Assembly (NCBI RefSeq): GCF_000142905.1
Contig: NW_013657660.1
Location: 334,056-398,055 of the forward strand
Reading direction: 5' to 3'
DNA length: 64,000 nt
From: Thecamonas trahens ATCC 50062
Taxonomy: Eukaryota; Protista; Apusomonadida
Both the position numbers and the translations under genes were made by a program. Shown piece after piece: positions 3 to 8,287 of this stretch. The first letter of the stretch is position 1; every line of letters starts with the position of its first letter. Under the pieces are notes generated by a model, which was given only the letters and a program-made list of their open reading frames with translations, did no database searches and had not been told where the DNA came from.

Positions 3-1125
3 CGTGCGCGCCACGTCTTCCTTCAGCCCATCCACGTCCTTCGCCTCCTCCGCGAGCTGTATCAGTTCCAGCGGCGGCTTGGCATTGCGCATCTCGGCGT
101 CATCCACAAGGTGTTGGCCCGGTCCGACGCGTCCATGGCCGCCCTCTCGATCGACGAGGCCGAGACACTCGCCATCCCCATTCCAGACCTGTGCGGCGCC
201 CACAACTACCATGTAATCCGCATGCGCGCCTTTATTGAGCGGCAAGAGATCCAGGTGAAGGATCTTGTCCGCGCCTACGCCACCGAAGTCAAGCACGTGG
301 TCATGTACACCCGTGCCGACCGCCTCGAGCTCATCCACGGCATCCTCGCCGAGTCGCCAGGCGCCTCGCAACTTGACGGCTACTTTCCCGAAGACGAGCT
401 CCAGCAGTCGCTCTTCAACTCGCTCATCCTCGACGTCGCTGCGCCCGAAGGCGCCGCCATCCGCAAGTTTGTCAACAAAACCGACGCCGCCGGCGCTTCT
501 CTCGACCCACAAGCTGTCGTCGGCTTTGTCGACGCCCTCGCCAACGACCTCGCCGTCATGTACCGCGTCGCTGACGCTGACGCCGCCCGCTTGCACATGC
601 TTGTTGCACGCGCCGTCATCCCGCGCGTCATCGCCCCATCTGTGCCTACCTCGAGGCGCAGACCAGCGATCGCGACGCCGTCTTTACCTCGCAGGCCGCA
701 TGGCTTCGCAAGCTTCCCCCCAGGACTTTGGTGTCTCGGAGCTGTTTGTCGCCGGCGCTGCTGCCGCCTGCTTGCCGCTCTGCGCAGACGCCATCGCACT
801 CGCCGAGGATCTCCCGTTCCACATCGTACCGTCAGACGTCGCCGCCAACCTTGTCGCCTTTGCTCGCGCCATCTACGATCAGCCAACCTTGGATCCGGAC
901 TCGTCCGCCACTCTTGGCGCCGACGACACCTTTCCCGTTGTTGTCTATGCCCTCGTCCACTCGGACCTCGCCACACCCTGGGCCGTCCTCGACTTTCTCA
1001 ACGCCTTTTGCTCTCGCCCACTCTTCCCCTCGGAAGCCCAGTACTGCGCCGTCACCGTCGAGGCCGCCCTCACCCACATCAATCAGGTCTCGCCGGCCGA
1101 CATCGACAAGCACCGCACCCCGTAG
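3..1125 (+). CDS. VPS9-domain Rab5-family GEF, 5'-truncated at window edge, with two apparent frameshifts (C-runs 634-637 and 716-721)
   Basis: The C-terminus carries the VPS9 motifs 'LGADDTFPVVVYALVHSDL' and 'SEAQYCAVTVEAALTHI'. The frame is open from base 3. Adding one C at each run gives the continuous reading ...VIAPICAYLEAQTSDRDAVFTSQAAWLRKLPPQDFGVSE... Confidence 0.75.
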
Positions 1126-1160
1126 CCACGCGGTGTTTCTGTGGTAGCAGCTCAGGCCGC

Positions 1161-1220
1161 CGTCGGCGATGCTCCGTTGGCGATGCTCCGTCGGCGATGC
1201 TCCGTCGGCGATGCTCCGTC
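1161..1220. repeat. 14-bp tandem repeat (GGCGATGCTCCGTC) x4 downstream of the VPS9 gene
   Basis: Read directly; one copy has a C>T change. Confidence 0.9.
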
Positions 1221-1440
1221 TGAGGGCAAACAACAACGATGACATCAGTCCGCTTCTGCAGAGAGAAAAATATATGTGTGTGTCCCGTCCCGTCCGTCCA
1301 CATTGTTGCGGTGGTGCGGCCCGAAAGCAGCGTTTTTTTTGCCCCCCGTCCCCCCTCCCCTCTCCCCCCTTCCCCCCACCCCCCACCACCCCACCTGGCT
1401 ACCTTTCCACACCGACATCCACACTCATCGCCTCCTGCGC

Positions 1441-3242
1441 ATGGAGTCGACACGGTCACTGGACCGCCTCCCTGTGGGCAATGGAGTTGTGCCTGGGCGG
1501 CGTGTGCGCAGTCCGCTCAAGAACAAAGGTGCCCGGTCACTCTTTCCCTTCCCCTCCCTCCCCCCCTCTCCGGCTGGCCGCCGGCACGTGCCGACCGGCC
1601 AAGGCGGTGCCCAAAGTGGTGGTCTCGGCCGGGCTCGAGGGCAGGGGAAGGGGCAGCGGCAGGGGCAAGTACACCGCCAGGGACACCATACTCGACATGG
1701 TCATGCTCAGTCTGCTCGTGGTGGCCTGCGTCGTCCTCCTCGCATGGCCCCGCGGAGCCGGGAACCCCCGCGTTCGCACGGCCACCACGGCGGCCAGCCG
1801 ACGACGGCCAATCGTCCGCTGCCGCCGCCGGCAACGTCGACCGCTCTGGCCACCGCTTCGAACCAGCCAGGCCTTCGTCGCCGCCCGAGTGCAAGCCGCC
1901 CGCCGCAGCCGCAGCCGCCGCAGCCGCAGTCGGTCCACCAGGTCGAACCGCCCACGCTCGAGAACGATTTGCACGCTTGGACGCCCGCAATGATCTCGCT
2001 CCTCCTCACAGACATGACTCCGCTGGTTGTCGACAACCAGCTCGAGCCGCCGGCAGTCGATCCGGCAGTCGAGTCAGCCGCCGTCGACGCTCTCTTCTTT
2101 GACTCGGATTCGGAGACGATGGCATTTTCGCCGCACGACCCCATCGACATTGCCTCTATCTTGGTCTCGCCCGCCGCCTTTCCTGCCGCGTCTCCAGCCG
2201 GCAAGCACTCGGTGGCTTCGCACTTGCGATCGCCATCGGTTCTCCCACTGCTACCCACCACACCGTCTACCTCTGCTCACGAGCTCGGCCCCATCGGGCC
2301 GGCGCTTTTCTCTCACTCTGAGCCCGTCGTACCGCCCGCGCCTCCCGCCGAAACGGCCTCCCCGCACAGCCTCGCGCCCATTGCGCCGCCGACTGTCATT
2401 GACTCTGCCATTACTGTCGATTCCGACTCGGACGCCGAGTCTGACGACGCTGCCATAGCAGCCTTTGACTTTGCCCTCGAATCGGAAATCTCATTCATGG
2501 ACGTCCTGGCCACATCCGCCGAGCCCGTCGAGCCAGACGAGCCCGTCGCCGTTGAGCCCTCCCCGTCTCCCTCCCCCTCCCCCTCGTCATCACTCTCTAA
2601 CTCGCCTTGCCCGTCACCGCGGCCCATCGCCGCCGACCCCGCACCCGCCCAGGCTGTCAACCCCTCGCCTCACGCCACCCCGCCGCGGCCTCCAACAAGC
2701 CGAATGTCATCACGCCCTTGCTGGTCGCTCTCGCCATGATCATTCCCAACATTCACAGATACGGCACCATGGCTATCCGTGCCCACCCGCTGCGGGTCCT
2801 CGCCATCTTTGCTGCATGCCTTGGCCTCCCGTCGCTCGCCCTTGTTTTTCCGGCCCCGGTCGCCCTCCTCTTTGCGCTTGCCGCAAGCATCTCATTCATC
2901 GCACTCTCGCCGGCGCCGCGGCTCTGCACCACCGTGGTCTCGGCTTGCCTCCTCTCACTCCTTGCCGCTTCAGTCACCGGCTTTATTGTTCCTCTCAATG
3001 GAGCTGAACGCATCCTCAGCGCCTGCATCGTCCTGCTTACCTGGCACACGCGACCGGCATGGCCCGCCGCAGTCTGGCTTTCTCTGGCTGGCCAGGCCAT
3101 GGTCGCCCGCACCCCACTTGGCACCAACTACATCACGCACTGGTTTTGCAGCCTGGTGGCCCTCGCCACAGTCCACGTCGCCACCGCGCCTGCGTCGCCG
3201 CCGGCTGCCGCGCATCGCCGCGCTGTGCCGCCTGCCCAATGA
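1441..3242 (+). CDS. Hypothetical protein with a Pro/Ser/Asp-rich disordered region and a C-terminal multi-TM segment; probable frameshift near 2661-2681
   Basis: ORF 1276..2739 (ATG at 1441) overlaps ORF 2607..3242, which has about 5-6 hydrophobic helices. One extra C in a C4 run joins them. The 5' structure and any introns are uncertain. Confidence 0.45.
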
Positions 3243-3245
3243 ACA

Positions 3246-6200
3246 TCACAAGTCGTAGTGTGACGGCGAGCTCCCGCTCCCGCCGCCGCCGAACTCGCGA
3301 GCCATGTTGACGTTGAACAGAATCGACGGTGAGCCAAAGAACGAGTCGCCGCCCTGCATCAGACCCGAGGCAAGCGACGCCGCAGACTCAAATCGCGACC
3401 GCCCGACCGACGACGCACCGTCGTAGAACGAGCCGCCGTCCCCGACGCGCCCGACAGCGAGATCGCCGCCGTGTACAGCGCAGCTCTCTCGGACCGGTGC
3501 CGCCGCGTGCGGAACTGCTGGTGTCGCCGCCACATCGCGATACCGACCGCGACAGAGAGAAGGCACGAGACCGAGGCCGCCAGAATGATCGGCCGGAAGC
3601 ATTGCGAGCCGGTGCACGTCGACGACTCGGACTGCAGGTGAATCCATTTGACGCCGTCAGCAACGCTGGCCCCAATCGCTTGCCCGAGCGAGACTCCGGC
3701 AAGCACAATTGGAAAGTGGTTGACCGAGAAGCAATCGCGGATCATAAGCGGCATGAGCGCGTCGACCGCACCGTACAGCAGCCCGGTGCCGGCCAGCCCG
3801 GCCTCAATCAGCCACTGGTGCGCGTACGAGAGCAGCAGGTGTGCCACAGACATGAGCGTCGAGATTACAATGACCGAATACGAGTGATGGACGTGCGGGA
3901 GCGCTTGCGTCAGGTTGCCCTCGAACAACGCGCCGACAAACCGCGCCAGCCCAAACAGAGCGTACGCCAGCGACACGTTCGCCTTGCGCCCCGCCGCCCG
4001 CTCGATATCGCCAATGTACGACACAACCGCGGCGGTAAAGCCCTGGCAGAGGGCGGCAACCAGGAACAGCGACTGGAACTCACTCGACGCCACAAGATCG
4101 CGGACAGCAAGGACCGGCGACGACGAAAACTTGAACCATGACGGCGATGTGAACCGTGCAGACGTCGGTAGCGCCATCGTGCCCACCGCGGCCTCATGCG
4201 CCACTCCGCCAACCCCGTGACCAGCCCCGAGCGTGGCACCCAGCACGTAGTCGGCAGCTGCGCGGTTTGGCGCGAGCCCGACCGAGTACGACCGGTCGCG
4301 AACCAGCGAGAGCGACGACGCCGAAATCCGCCGCGACATGGCAGACACGCCGCGGACCCGCGCCAGCCGCGCCTCCATCTGCATCACAGGGTTAAACTGC
4401 ATCGGAAGGAGGACGCCAACCCACGAAATGACGAGGAGGAGCATGGCCAGCCAAAAGAACATCGCATGGACGCTGACGTCAATGCTCAAAAGCGCAAGGC
4501 CCTGCAAGGCCCCGCCGAGCGCCGGCACACCCTGCACAAAACCGACCACGGACGATGCCCACGAGAACTGGAGTAGAACAAGGACAGTCCACAGCGCAGA
4601 GAGCTGGATGGCATATGAGCCGAGCTCCACCGCAAGAATGCACATGCACAGCGGCGCTACGACCGCAGTGACCTTGGAAAACGACATGACCCACATGCCC
4701 ATGTACCCGAGCCAGACCGCCACTCCCGAGACAAGCACCGCTCGCCGCGGCCCGAACCGCTCCACAGCATAACCGGCAACAAGCCCGAGCCACCGCCCCG
4801 ACAGCCTCGCCATCTTGACCCAGTACGCGTCGTTGGCCGTAATGCCAAACAGCTTCTCCATGTGCTCTGAAAAAAACGCCGCCGCGTACATCGACGCCGT
4901 GCCAAACGCAAGCGTGCAGCACGCCACAACCACCAGCGTCACTGACGGGAGCCACGCCTCGGCCAGACACCAAACATCAATCGACCGCACCATCACAGCA
5001 TCCACAATCTCCTCCAACGACTCCCACGCATACGCGCCCATCGCTGGTAACGTACCTGCGCGCTCACTGTCGTCTGTCTGCGCCCGCAGCCGCGCTCCGC
5101 CGCTCACACCGTTGATTGAGCCGCCCAGCAGCGGTGAGTGCTCGTCAAACGTCCGCTCCGAAGATGCCGTTGACTCGTCCACTGCCCGCCGCGATCGCCG
5201 CCAGCAGCATGCCAGTGACTGCTCGCCAGACATCGACCACACCAGCAGCACCGAGGAGTGGTGCGACGAGACAAAGAGGTCCTGCGCCCGCGACCACTCG
5301 TACGCCGCCTCAGACGAGAACACATGCCGCGTCACCGCGTCCATAAACGTCCGCGCGTAGCCTGTCGCCGCCACAAGCGCCGATTCGCGGTCGTCCAGCC
5401 CGCCAAGCGCCCGCCCGCATCGTGCAGACGCCCGCCACAGCCACGAGCCCTCGCCGGCTGAGCAGTCCGGCAGGTAGTTGACAATCCGCAGCCCGTAGAA
5501 GACACCTGTCGAGGGCGAGCCCACAAAACGCGCCGCAGCCAGCCGATCCTCTAGCGCCGCGCGAGTCTCGGCATCGACAGCACCCCAGTTGGGCACCGAA
5601 ATGGCCACAATCGACAGGTCGTAGTCCTGCCACCCAAGCCCGGCTAGAAAGTGAACGTCACGCGCGAGCTGCGCAAGCACAGGCTCGACCCGCTCGAGCT
5701 TGACATTGGTCGAGAGCCCGTAGCCTGACTCGCCCCATCCATTGACCGGATGAAAGGCAAAGTCCTCCACAGCGCCCAGTAGATTCAACTCGTCCAGCGC
5801 AGACGTGGCCAGGAACCAAATGTTCTCTTCCACCATGTACCCCATGTTGTACACCATGAACAAGCCGAATAGGTCGTTGACAAACGTCGTCGCCTCGTTC
5901 TCCAGCCGCGCAAAGAGCGCATCGAGCTCGCGCTCCGCGTCCGCCAGCCAGCTCGGCGACTTGAGGATGGTGCGCGAGATGTAGAGCGAGGAGGTGCCAA
6001 GCCGCAGGTGCGGCTGGCCTGACGCGTCGATTTCTTCCACATGCGCCACTCCGCCGGGGCGGTGCTCGCGGATCCGTGCCATCCACACCTCACGCTCGCG
6101 TGCGCTCCCGGCTTCGAGTACCCAGCTCTGCTTGACAAACAGCGGATCCTCGGCTTCGTGCACCGTCAGCTGCGTCTCGGTCATCGAGACCAACTGCTCC

Positions 6201-7960
6201 GGCGAGTCCATCGTCACCGCTGCGCTGCTCTCCAGTGACTTGTCTTCCAACACCGTCACAACAAACGGGAACTGCGGCGTCGACACAGTCGACGGCGTCA
6301 TGTAGCTCGGCAGCTCGCAGTACTCGACGGGCTCGACCTCGACCAGGTACTCGAGCGGAATCGAGCCAGCGTACGCCACGTCGTCAGTGTCGGATGCGCC
6401 CGACGACGAGATGCCAAACCCAAACGAGGTCGTCCGCTTCGCCGCAGGCCCGTTGGCCCGGAATAGCGACGGCTCGCGCCGCTGAGGCGACGCCAGCTGC
6501 GCCCGCGCCGCAAGAATCGCCGCCGCCGCTCCGCGCGACTCCGAGCCCACAGGTGTATCCAGTGTATGATCAGAGCACACCGGCGAGTCGCTGCTCGTCA
6601 GAAAGTAGTACAGCTTGTCCCCCACAAGCCGAAAGTTGTAAGTCGACCGCAGCGGCGACCGCCATGGGTTCATCACCTCGCGGCACCGAGGTTCAACAGA
6701 GCTGATCAGCGCCAGGTCGCCAGCGTAGTCGAGTAGGTGCGGGCCAAGGAGCGGCGCAGACTCTGCGCCCGACACCTTGAGCTGTTCAAAGTAGAAGAAC
6801 TCACGCCAGTCGTCCTGGCCCTCACGCTCCACAAGATCAACTGCCTCGCGATGCGCCCGCGTCTTGGTCTCGTACAACCGTGCAAACGGGACAGAAAACT
6901 TGCTCGCGTTCGACTCGGTCGACCGCAACGCGCCACCCGTTGATCCAAAAAGCGTCGACGAGCTTGAAGTCGCGTACATCATGTTGCGCGAGAACGAGGT
7001 CCGCCCAGTCAGGTGCTTCATCAGCTCCTCCCACTCTTGCAGCCGCCGCAGATCACCGAGCTTAATCGATGCTGGCAGCGTTCGGTGCCCGCCAAGAATC
7101 GACTTGACGTTTGACCAGAGGACAAAGAAGACCGTGCCGTTGACAATGCCGTGGATGCCGACCACCAGCACCTGCGACAACGCCAGCCACGCCGGGACTG
7201 ACCCGGTCGCTGCCAGGCTGATCTCCTGCCCGATAAAGAGCGAAAAGATGACTGCAAAGCCGCCGCAGTACCACACCACGTACGAGAGCAGCGCCGCGTT
7301 CCATCCCAGCTGCTTGGTCGAGAGCATGCGAAAGGCGAGAACAAAGACGTACAGGTTAAACACGTACGCCAGAGAGAGGGGAATGTCAAACAGCACAATC
7401 CGGCACGACGACGGCTGGATCCAACAGAGCCGGGACTGGGCGTGGATCGGGCCGACCGAGTCGCCGCACGGCAGCACCATCCAGACAGTGGAGAGAAAGG
7501 CACAGGTGAGGATGCCGACCACCGTCATCCACTCTTTGAAGAAGAAGAATCGAATCGAAGCAGACCGGATCTGGTGAAAAACGTCCAGCCCGATGGTAGT
7601 GTGGATCCCGATCCATGCCGTGAGAAAAAACTGCGTCTGAACAGCCTCGAGGTGGCAGGCCACTGAGCTTGTTACCAGCGTCGACATGACGAGCGGAAAC
7701 TGGACAGTGGAAAACACGTTGCAGATAGCCATGTACTTGATCATCCGTAACGTCTTGATCCGCGAGAGCACAGGATGGTTGTGCACCACAAAGGCAACCA
7801 GTAGTCCGACAAATATCGAGATAATCCCCGCAACGCCCAGTGTGTAGTCGAGCCATGACGGCGCCTCGATCGGCGCAGGTGTCGTCGAGTTTGGAAGTGG
7901 TGGTGGTGGGGGGGTGGTGGGAGCGTGGTGTTCCCTACCATGCCCCAACCTTCGAACCAT
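3246..7960 (-). CDS. Fusion protein: cAMP-receptor-like 7TM GPCR + degenerate PIP kinase domain with inserted PH domain + nodulin-like MFS transporter
   Basis: One ORF (3359..8146, likely ATG 7960). 7TM at about 7855-7115 ('CHLEAVQTQFF', 'LCWI', 'GIVNGTVFF'). PH at about 6675-6060 ('FRLVGDKLYYF', 'GSIPL', 'LEAGSAREREVWMARI'). PIPK-like motifs 'LAQLARDVHFLAGLGWQDYDLSIV' and 'YARTFMDAVTRHVF'. About 12-TM MFS at 4955-3530 ('GYAVERFGPRR'). The C-terminus probably extends to the stop at 3246 via a +1 G at 3440-3443. Confidence 0.8.
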
Positions 7961-8287
7961 GCTCCCATACTTGGTGGTGCAATGTGCGGGGGAGGGAAAG
8001 GTGTAGGAATGGCGACGGGGAGGGGGGGGGGGGAGGAGTGTGAGGTGGTGGTACAGTCTTGGCTGGCGGAGGAACGAGTGCTGCGTCGACAGCCCGGACC
8101 GTGCACGAATGTCACAGGATATCGTGACTACAGCGTGACTTGACAAGGGTGTTTGCTAATGCGATGGTTGTAGAGGGTCCAACAGAGCTCACTGACAACG
8201 CAAGACATGTGCCACGAGGAGGCACGCGCGGCAAGGGTAGCAGAGGTGGCAAAGCGGGGGGGGGGGTGGGGGGGAGAGATGGCATCA

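Follow-up and report, generated by a model that had tools for sequence, protein, structure and literature searches.

The fusion protein AMSG_04709 of Thecamonas trahens ATCC 50062 is genuine and conserved: in one chain with about 19 membrane helices, a GPCR-fold seven-transmembrane (7TM) domain is followed by a helix-8-like helix, a conserved motif, a PH domain, a PIP-kinase-like domain, a linker and a 12-helix MFS domain, in that order. The identities of these modules are established at the level of family profiles or fold only, and the family apparently is restricted to apusomonads. Our literature search found no description of a 7TM-PH-PIPK-MFS architecture, in line with the earlier note on this DNA, which knew of no GPCR-PIPK with an appended MFS carrier. 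We hypothesize, with a probability of roughly one in three, that the protein is a receptor-regulated carrier ('transceptor') that would act in cis through its PH/pseudokinase region in a lipid-dependent manner.

Gene, open frame and family

The gene lies on the minus strand of the window (the whole stretch of 64,000 nucleotides that was analysed), where an open frame extends from 8146 to 3359, with its stop codon at 3359-3361. Its first ATG, at 7960, gives 1533 codons, which bears out the single ORF of about 1530 codons, without stop or frameshift between the modules, that had been described before. Of the bounds given for that ORF, the upper one (7960) was exact. At 3246, given as the lower bound, a different ORF ends (3246-3647), which lies in another frame than AMSG_04709, whose own frame stops at 3359. 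A frameshifted C-terminus reaching 3246 was considered and rejected, since the main frame downstream fits the tail of the orthologue better. In one low-depth read contig an additional C follows 3439, probably through an error in the reads or the assembly.

Over 98% of its length, the encoded protein matches AMSG_04709 (NCBI, 1511 aa) at 100% identity, an entry that is annotated as "uncharacterized" and modelled by NCBI as a single gene. The two differ at the extreme 5' end, where the annotated intron (7865-7938; 74 nt, GT..AG) rejoins the ORF at codon 33; ORF codons 1-32 lack GC3 bias and have no counterpart in the orthologue. Past about 30 codons, GC3 is the highest of the codon positions throughout the ORF, or equals GC1 in aa 926-1000. 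The features are as follows:

7865-7968, minus strand: alternative annotated 5' end (ATG at 7968, 10-codon exon 7939-7968, then intron)
3359-7960, minus strand: the complete ORF, 1533 uninterrupted codons and the stop, equal to AMSG_04709 save the extreme 5' end
7112-7855, minus strand: GPCR-fold domain of seven helices (aa 36-283); its extracellular loop 2 contains a beta-hairpin
7010-7060, minus strand: strongly conserved helix after TM7 in a helix-8-like position (aa 301-317, core RRLQEWE)
6737-6808, minus strand: cytosolic motif with the strongest conservation in the family (aa 385-408, core GAES.PLLGPH)
6041-6736, minus strand: PH domain with long disordered loop insertions (aa 409-640)
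5309-6040, minus strand: PIP-kinase-like domain, probable pseudokinase (aa 641-884)
4991-5308, minus strand: linker (aa 885-990) with weak sequence conservation and differing lengths, which keeps the frame open in all family members
3521-4990, minus strand: MFS transporter domain, 6+6 helices by hydropathy (aa 991-1480)
4742-4774, minus strand: MFS motif A, G-x3-E-R-x-G-x-R-R, between TM2 and TM3 (aa 1063-1073)
3362-3520, minus strand: basic low-complexity C-terminal tail (aa 1481-1533)

Hydropathy indicates about seven helices in aa 36-283, a soluble region in aa 290-1000, and two sets of six helices in aa 1004-1185 and 1298-1476 that are separated by the central loop of the MFS domain (aa 1186-1297), and thus supports the approximately 19 TM segments proposed in the earlier note.

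Five members make up the family: the query, P0002 on a TARA metagenome scaffold, P0003 and P0004 on two Logan contigs (all three environmental members being full-length uninterrupted ORFs), and a T. trahens paralogue on contig C57 with the modules in the same order; P0007 and P0009 are fragments. The observation clearly exceeds what chance could produce, since full-length homologues resemble the query at identities of 49%, roughly 37% and roughly 32%. Identity between the query and P0002 amounts to 66% in the 7TM domain, 49% in the middle region and 55% in the MFS domain. Since the same chain is found in three environmental contigs and in the C57 paralogue, the fusion is real and conserved, and the view that the fusion is no frameshift artefact is confirmed by these four other loci. 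Neither the MFS domain by itself nor the 7TM alignment retrieved any match in word-based homologue searches, and a JGI metagenome scan with a profile of the 7TM domain plus the middle region returned no relatives. A candidate third fused paralogue on contig C2, suggested by a weak Nodulin-like match, was rejected, as the C2 protein is Rif1_N.

Identity of the modules

Searched with the whole query protein, Pfam gave no match at E<=1 and phmmer against the PDB returned nothing, while three-sequence profiles against the PDB yielded only sub-threshold PH, PIP4K and FtsX rows. The expectation that each segment would match its profile therefore failed for the query alone, but the modules find support through family members or fold.

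The AF2 model of the 7TM domain contains seven helices (pLDDT 68.5, moderate; pTM 0.59), and all of its 50 best Foldseek matches are GPCRs, with GPR56 at the top (1.1e-4), so that the AlphaFold check suggested in the earlier note gives a GPCR fold. Cys102 and Cys179 are conserved across the full-length members compared. Language-model neighbours of the domain in the Atlas belong to Dicty_CAR/7tm_2 clusters (0.94-0.96), and Git3 shows up in one marginal neighbour cluster, among 12% of its members. Neither the query nor the family members match the Pfam profiles Dicty_CAR, 7tm_2 or Git3, and genome scans with PF05462 and PF00002 (E<=1) matched other loci and not AMSG_04709. As judged by sequence profiles, the domain lies outside Pfam Dicty_CAR and 7tm_2 membership. 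The label "CAR/Git3-like" given to it before can thus be kept for the fold and the Dicty_CAR/7tm_2 neighbourhood, but not for Pfam membership, and its Git3 part is marginal.

The conserved motif at aa 385-408 directly precedes the PH domain and has no assignable fold, AF2 confidence being low there. The PH domain itself, which the earlier note had expected to emerge from profile searches, does so in family members: P0007 and P0009 score above the Pfam PH cut-off, and P0002 matches weakly (0.11). In the AF2 model, comparison by VIA with the C-terminal PH domain of pleckstrin (Z 12.0, rmsd 2.1 Å, 92 of 94 residues, model residues 60-286) reveals the seven-strand sandwich with a capping C-terminal helix. 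Basic residues around aa 434-444 are candidates for the phosphoinositide-binding basic signature of PH strands 1-2. Insertion of the PH domain into the kinase N-lobe was rejected, as the motif preceding it aligned with the N-terminal region and G-loop of PIPKs at an hhalign probability of only 1.2%; in the global hhalign alignment, the kinase G-loop and Lys site are both C-terminal to the PH domain.

The region called PIPK-like in the earlier note proved homologous to true PIP kinases. A family profile search of 1.84 billion proteins detected a PIP5K protein (P0010) at an HMM E-value of 5.9e-5, and hhalign against the PIPKs of T. trahens itself gave probabilities of 93.8% (local) and 95.7% (global, E 3.9e-9), the global alignment covering the whole PIPK core over 239 columns. 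Among the top 50 Foldseek matches of the middle-region model, PI5P4K is the sole non-PH family named, and a few multidomain chains among these matches carry PH among other domains. PF01504 did not match the query, its genome scan yielding nine other loci without AMSG_04709, and an Atlas look-up of the kinase-like part gave no usable match. The AF2 model of the middle region has low confidence (overall pLDDT 54.9), with the kinase N-lobe below 50.

Arg663 occupies the ATP-binding Lys site, and Arg is found there in all five members, a call that depends on the low-confidence N-terminal portion of the global hhalign alignment. The MDYSL-type Asp is retained in the query (Asp779) and in P0002, both of which have Asn (Asn828 in the query) or Gly in place of the IID-type Asp, whereas P0003, P0004 and the C57 paralogue exhibit the opposite pattern. 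A full catalytic set (GKSGS-type loop with Lys, MDYSL and IID-type Asp) occurs in none of the five. The kinase-like domain is probably a pseudokinase and catalytically dead, because Arg stands at the Lys site in all members and one Asp is missing from each, and the loss of a different Asp in the two subgroups fits relaxed selection on catalysis. This complementary loss offers a natural case of a PIP kinase becoming a pseudoenzyme.

For the C-terminal domain, P0003 matches Pfam MFS_1 at 7.1e-10 over profile positions 2-343 of 347, its 38.8 bits exceeding the cut-off of 33.4, and the query matches a T. trahens protein on contig C4 at E 1.2e-10, which itself has MFS_1 (1.1e-11) and NFD4_C (1.7e-6). 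With the family profile, the best PDB match is OxlT (0.015), followed by a lactate MFS transporter (0.082). Genome scans with PF06813 and PF23262 matched proteins on C46 and C4 and missed AMSG_04709, and the C-terminal piece of the C57 paralogue matches NFD4_C weakly (0.046). Nodulin-like/NFD4 carriers (PF06813, PF23262; oxalate:formate antiporter group) are thus the nearest sequence relatives, and together with the 6+6 helices this speaks for the "roughly 12-TM nodulin-like MFS domain" of the earlier note. Compared with these carriers, the MFS domain of AMSG_04709 falls under every Pfam threshold and is fused behind about 990 residues that make up the receptor and cytosolic domains.

G proteins and known receptor fusions

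A six-frame scan of the T. trahens genome, which an exon-split gene could escape, detected no G-alpha above the cut-off, and the sub-cut-off matches span only profile positions 160-266 (the GTPase core). T. trahens was also reported to be without heterotrimeric G-protein subunits (de Mendoza et al., 2014; PMC3971589). Judged by its genome, T. trahens has no detectable G-alpha, so AMSG_04709 would not be a GPCR in the functional sense. If G proteins are absent, the output must therefore be intramolecular or pass via non-G-protein partners.

The closest known architecture is that of GPCR-PIPKs (type IV; Dictyostelium RpkA, Phytophthora GK), which share with AMSG_04709 an N-terminal 7TM domain followed by a PIPK-core homologue in one chain, the order typical of that class (PMC5784254). 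Two canonical GPCR-PIPKs (A0A0L0DB47 and A0A0L0DRJ2) are encoded in the same genome. The 7TM domains of the canonical proteins may be related to that of AMSG_04709, with which they align weakly but in register over TM2-TM6, a stretch that holds the TM3 Cys and the Cys-Trp of loop 2 (hhalign, 33-49%). By contrast, the LRx9GI motif of the 7TM-kinase linker, a hallmark of GPCR-PIPKs, is present in both canonical T. trahens proteins (aa 415 and 388) and, by pattern search, in none of the linkers of the AMSG_04709 family. AMSG_04709 further differs in having a PH domain ahead of the kinase and a 12-helix MFS domain after it, in the loss of the catalytic Lys and of one Asp, and in matching neither PF01504 nor 7tm_2. 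A 2018 survey of GPCR-PIPKs named two other T. trahens genes and not AMSG_04709. Proteins with additional C-terminal domains were discarded in that survey, and its filter would have dropped AMSG_04709 because of the MFS domain after the kinase. The absence of this Pfam-blank protein from the 2018 list suggests that profile catalogues can undercount divergent protist receptor fusions.

GPR155/LYCHOS is a precedent for the joining of a transporter to a 7TM domain. It likewise combines a transporter fold, a GPCR-fold 7TM domain and a cytosolic signalling domain in one chain, and its G-protein coupling is unclear (PMC12716839). However, its order is reversed, with the transporter before the 7TM domain, and it carries a 10-helix PIN-like transporter and a DEP domain instead of MFS and PH/PIPK-like domains. 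Since domain order and types differ, the likeness is an analogy only; LYCHOS is confined to holozoans, and a sequence relationship to AMSG_04709 is not expected.

Proposed mechanism and alternatives

We favor the receptor-regulated carrier introduced above. In this model, the kinase-like domain would no longer phosphorylate lipid, and the PH domain and pseudokinase would together bind phosphoinositides or act as a scaffold at the cytosolic side of the membrane. The 7TM sensor would work in cis, G proteins being absent, and a ligand-driven change in it might reach the MFS domain by way of the PH/pseudokinase module; alternatively, substrate occupancy of the MFS domain might be signalled back to the 7TM domain. 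The lipid identity of the membrane may also set carrier activity. The predicted topology would permit such coupling, with the C-terminus of the 7TM domain and both termini of the MFS domain in the cytosol. A more specific version, which we consider tentative, is a G-protein-independent transceptor in which either the 7TM sensor would gate the MFS carrier or the carrier would gate the sensor, by way of a PH/pseudo-PIP-kinase clamp reading the phosphoinositides of the membrane. It would descend from a GPCR-PIPK, in a lineage whose G proteins were lost.

GPCR-bigrams (7TM-enzyme fusions) and LYCHOS are the main hints of 7TM signalling without G proteins, and AMSG_04709 joins a 7TM sensor to a solute carrier and two putative lipid-reading modules, in a species that reportedly has no heterotrimeric G proteins. 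If true, the transceptor would be a third independent wiring of the GPCR fold, beside these two. Apusomonads are the sister group of opisthokonts, and therefore the family bears on which signalling architectures predated animals and fungi.

Alternatively, the MFS domain may have lost its transport function. The whole protein might then signal as a receptor or act as a scaffold, with the 12-helix domain as another sensor or as an anchor for membrane targeting, and the PH/pseudokinase region would recruit partners, e.g., active PIPKs or arrestin-domain proteins. This alternative is possible though doubtful. The middle module is probably non-catalytic, and there is a precedent in human PIP5KL1, an inactive scaffold-type PIPK that is soluble and single-domain; it has a PIPK fold without key catalytic residues, is presumed to act in binding or scaffolding, and is likened here by description only. 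The divergence of the query MFS domain from Pfam and the degraded motif A in the paralogue group point in the same direction. However, the query, P0002 and P0004 have an intact motif A, the MFS domain is as conserved between the query and P0002 as the rest of the protein, and a Cys-x-Gly-x-x-Cys-Phe sequence before the last helix is common to the query and a free-standing NFD4-type carrier.

It is unlikely that AMSG_04709 is instead an active non-canonical GPCR-PIPK, in which Arg663 and the remaining Asp suffice and locally made PIP2 regulates the attached carrier. Although the PIPK core is alignable throughout, each lineage retains one catalytic Asp, and the 7TM-then-PIPK order is that of GPCR-PIPKs, no member has the full catalytic set, the subgroups lost different Asp residues, and the G-loop departs from the GKSGS type. 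Replacement of Lys by Arg at the ATP-binding site is typically kinase-inactivating.

Still harder to credit is a single precursor cleaved in the disordered linker (aa 885-990) into a 7TM-PH-kinase-like part and a free MFS domain, separate or in a non-covalent complex: the linker is long, poorly conserved and variable in length, but no cleavage motif was seen in it, and a short conserved stretch (aa about 973-990) directly ahead of the first MFS helix suggests a structured junction. Finally, a gene-model artefact that merged two neighbouring genes is conceivable, as DNA of 64% GC contains few stop codons, long spurious ORFs are common within the window and the contigs from the two public read runs with the locus (3274-4370 and 6619-7599, library type not given) both miss the kinase-MFS junction, but it is highly improbable given that homologue searches revealed no ATG-led MFS-only homologue of this subfamily, that GC3 in the linker is nowhere under the other codon positions, although its margin over GC1 is nil at aa 926-1000, and that the same in-frame join recurs in four other loci at 32-49% identity despite the unconserved linker.

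Reading frame and relatives of the fused gene

The DNA analyzed is part of contig C20 of the 28.7-Mb, 64% GC genome of T. trahens, and the query protein is 100% identical to the NCBI "uncharacterized protein AMSG_04709" (T. trahens ATCC 50062, 1511 aa). The open frame runs from 8146 to 3359 on the minus strand, with 1533 stop-free codons from its first ATG at 7960, which bears out the uninterrupted ORF of about 1530 codons described in the earlier note. The upper end of the span reported there (3246-7960) is this ATG, but 3246 is the end of an overlapping ORF in another frame. The annotated model of AMSG_04709 differs from the ORF only at the extreme 5' end, so that two candidate starts lie 8 nt apart, the ORF ATG at 7960 versus an annotated ATG at 7968 that is followed by a short exon and an intron.

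Annotated 5' end of AMSG_04709
7968, minus strand: ATG and 10-codon exon; 74-nt GT..AG intron at 7865-7938; joins the ORF at codon 33

The annotated start is favoured, since the first ~30 (32) codons of the ORF show no GC3 bias and have no counterpart in the orthologue. Past these codons the third position has the highest GC content, including in the linker (aa 885-990), and its margin over GC1 disappears at aa 926-1000. Read contigs with the locus came from two runs of unrecorded library type and cover 3274-4370 and 6619-7599 only. In run X2, a low-depth Logan contig carries one additional C after 3439, which would move the C-terminal tail into the frame ending at 3246, the lower coordinate of the earlier note; this frame shift is probably an error, because beyond this point the main frame still looks like the tail of the orthologue.

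By hydropathy, about seven helices (aa 36-283) are separated by some 700 soluble residues from two sets of six (aa 1004-1185 and 1298-1476). Of 1.84 billion representative proteins, only ten matched a profile built from the N-terminal 985 residues, namely the query, three full-length relatives and six fragments.

Full-length relatives from environmental contigs
P0002: 1493 aa, 49% identical to the query, single ORF, TARA metagenome scaffold
P0003: 1639 aa, single ORF, Logan contig
P0004: 1440 aa, Logan contig

A T. trahens paralogue on contig C57 has the identical domain order; its nearest relative is P0003, probably its orthologue. The architecture, which the earlier note had proposed to look for in other protists, thus recurs in P0002, P0003, P0004 and this paralogue. 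All full-length members can be aligned from TM1 of the 7TM domain through the last MFS helix, and although the kinase-MFS linker is unconserved and variable in length, it is in frame in all of them, making it very unlikely that the gene model is an artefact in which two genes are accidentally read as one. Therefore, we regard the fused architecture as real with high confidence, as the earlier note had argued.

The C57 paralogue (L009, G000:C57:78000-87999) changes frame at ~6217-6290, where helix 6 of the MFS domain ends; P0003 is uninterrupted there. The two frames of the paralogue were searched separately with no spliced join, and the change might reflect an indel in the assembly, a very short intron or the onset of decay.

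Open reading frames of the paralogue in L009
2555..6952: first frame
6289..7197: second frame

Receptor, PH and kinase-like domains

The AF2 model of the 7TM domain, built on a 7-sequence alignment (pLDDT 68.5, pTM 0.59), shows seven helices and one more after them, and its extracellular loop 2 forms a beta-hairpin. In a Foldseek comparison with the PDB, the top 50 matches are all GPCRs. The adhesion receptors GPR56 (1.1e-4) and LPHN3 (7e-4) rank first, then come receptors of classes C, A and F; TM-scores lie at 0.4-0.5. The full-length members compared share two cysteines, Cys102 (top of TM3) and Cys179 (loop 2). Pfam GPCR profiles match no family member, and genome scans with Dicty_CAR and 7tm_2 (E<=1) recovered other T. 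trahens loci, one of them a canonical GPCR-PIPK, with neither the query gene nor its paralogue among the matches. With the 7TM domains of the two canonical T. trahens GPCR-PIPKs, hhalign gives a weak alignment (33-49%) whose register holds between TM2 and TM6. Taken together, the fold matches, the lack of a Pfam match and the weak hhalign result indicate that the domain, as modelled, belongs to an orphan family with a GPCR fold. The CAR/Git3-like label given to it earlier agrees, marginally so for Git3, with this fold and with its language-model neighbours (Dicty_CAR, 7tm_2 and GPR_Gpa2_C clusters, 0.94-0.96), but not with the Dicty_CAR profile; the best pointer to its kinship is the cAMP-receptor/adhesion clan.

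The best Dicty_CAR match in the genome (G000:C16:276490-277032, 2.1e-15) lies inside a 1153-aa open frame, which may be another long 7TM fusion protein. The two T. trahens members of the 2018 GPCR-PIPK survey are other genes, on C22 and C61, and proteins carrying further C-terminal domains were excluded from it (PMC5784254). In the C22 stretch (L024), near 1602, the N-terminal start of the ORF for the canonical GPCR-PIPK A0A0L0DB47 differs from that of the UniProt sequence quoted in the survey, which suggests an alternative start or a 5' intron in the model.

TM7 is directly followed by a highly conserved helix (aa 301-317), and C-terminal to it lies the most conserved motif of the family (aa 385-408), to which no fold could be assigned. 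The AF2 model covering aa 350-900 is of poor quality as a whole (pLDDT 54.9), apart from confident islands. By VIA-align, one of its regions, model residues 60-286 (aa 409-635, with long disordered loops within), matches the C-terminal PH domain of pleckstrin over 92 of 94 residues (Z 12.0, rmsd 2.1 Å), and in two fragments from the family PH scores above the Pfam cut-off, so that the PH domain expected in the earlier note is present. Insertion of this domain into the kinase N-lobe is unsupported, as the motif preceding it gave no alignment with the PIPK N-terminus (1.2%).

Homology of the PIPK-like region to PIP kinases is likewise supported, by four results. The family profile matches P0010 (E 5.9e-5 for the whole library), a PF01504 protein (2.5e-39); hhalign of the kinase-like block against five canonical PIPKs, four from T. 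trahens, gave 93.8% over 116 columns, and 95.7% over 239 columns in global mode (E 3.9e-9). Among the top 50 Foldseek matches of the middle region, PI5P4K is the sole named non-PH family, and a few multidomain chains include PH among other domains. In the global alignment, Arg663 occupies the position of the ATP-binding Lys, Asp779 that of the MDYSL-type Asp, and Asn828 that of the IID-type Asp. The Lys site is Arg in all five full-length members; the query and P0002 keep the MDYSL-type Asp and lack the IID-type Asp, whereas the reverse holds for P0003, P0004 and the paralogue. With a complete catalytic set in none of the five, the domain is probably a pseudokinase judging from sequence, the N-lobe part of both alignment and model being of low confidence. 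Unlike both canonical T. trahens GPCR-PIPK genes, the query family has no detectable LRx9GI motif, a hallmark of GPCR-PIPKs.

The MFS domain

Taken by itself, the query reaches no profile cut-off for its MFS part, yet results from the family consistently support the MFS assignment made earlier, with nodulin-like/NFD4-type carriers as the nearest kin. P0003 matches Pfam MFS_1 above cut-off over the entire profile (7.1e-10), and the second half of the query matches (1.2e-10) a protein that T. trahens encodes as a free-standing gene on C4 and that itself scores with MFS_1 (1.1e-11) and NFD4_C (1.7e-6). Motif A is intact (aa 1063-1073), and the family shares with the C4 carrier a Cys-x-Gly-x-x-Cys-Phe motif ahead of the last helix. 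Against the PDB, the family profile picks up OxlT (0.015), the oxalate:formate antiporter, as well as a lactate MFS (0.082). Two free-standing genes likely represent the source family of the fused carrier domain.

Free-standing Nodulin-like/NFD4-type MFS genes
G000:C4:122861-123478 (L010:3814-4986), minus strand
G000:C46:62122-63537

A weak Nodulin-like match elsewhere (L025, G000:C2:535500-544500; ORF 154..4260, minus strand, 1368 aa) looks spurious, as this ORF matches Rif1_N (3.4e-5).

A putative receptor-carrier

According to de Mendoza et al. (2014; PMC3971589), T. trahens lacks the heterotrimeric G-protein subunits. Consistent with this, a G-alpha scan of the genome gave nothing at the Pfam cut-off, and the sub-threshold matches were limited to profile positions 160-266, the GTPase-core part. 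Several GPCR-fold genes are retained in the genome.

Given a conserved architecture in which the kinase has degenerated and the carrier motif is intact, in an organism that lacks G proteins, we infer a receptor-carrier wired in cis, with a probability of roughly 0.35. In such a protein, the PH and pseudokinase module would sit at the inner leaflet, bound to phosphoinositides or partners, and connect the 7TM bundle with the MFS domain, and transport or signalling might thereby depend on both ligand and membrane lipid identity. Alternatively, the MFS domain might be a non-transporting sensor or anchor, which we consider doubtful given the intact motif A. It is distinctly unlikely that the kinase is unusual but still active, as every member lacks part of the catalytic set, and cleavage of the chain in the linker seems highly improbable.

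Neither AMSG_04709 nor a 7TM-MFS fusion was found named in the full-text literature. The nearest architectural precedent for the putative receptor-carrier is GPR155/LYCHOS, a transporter-7TM-DEP fusion (2025 catalogue, PMC12716839).
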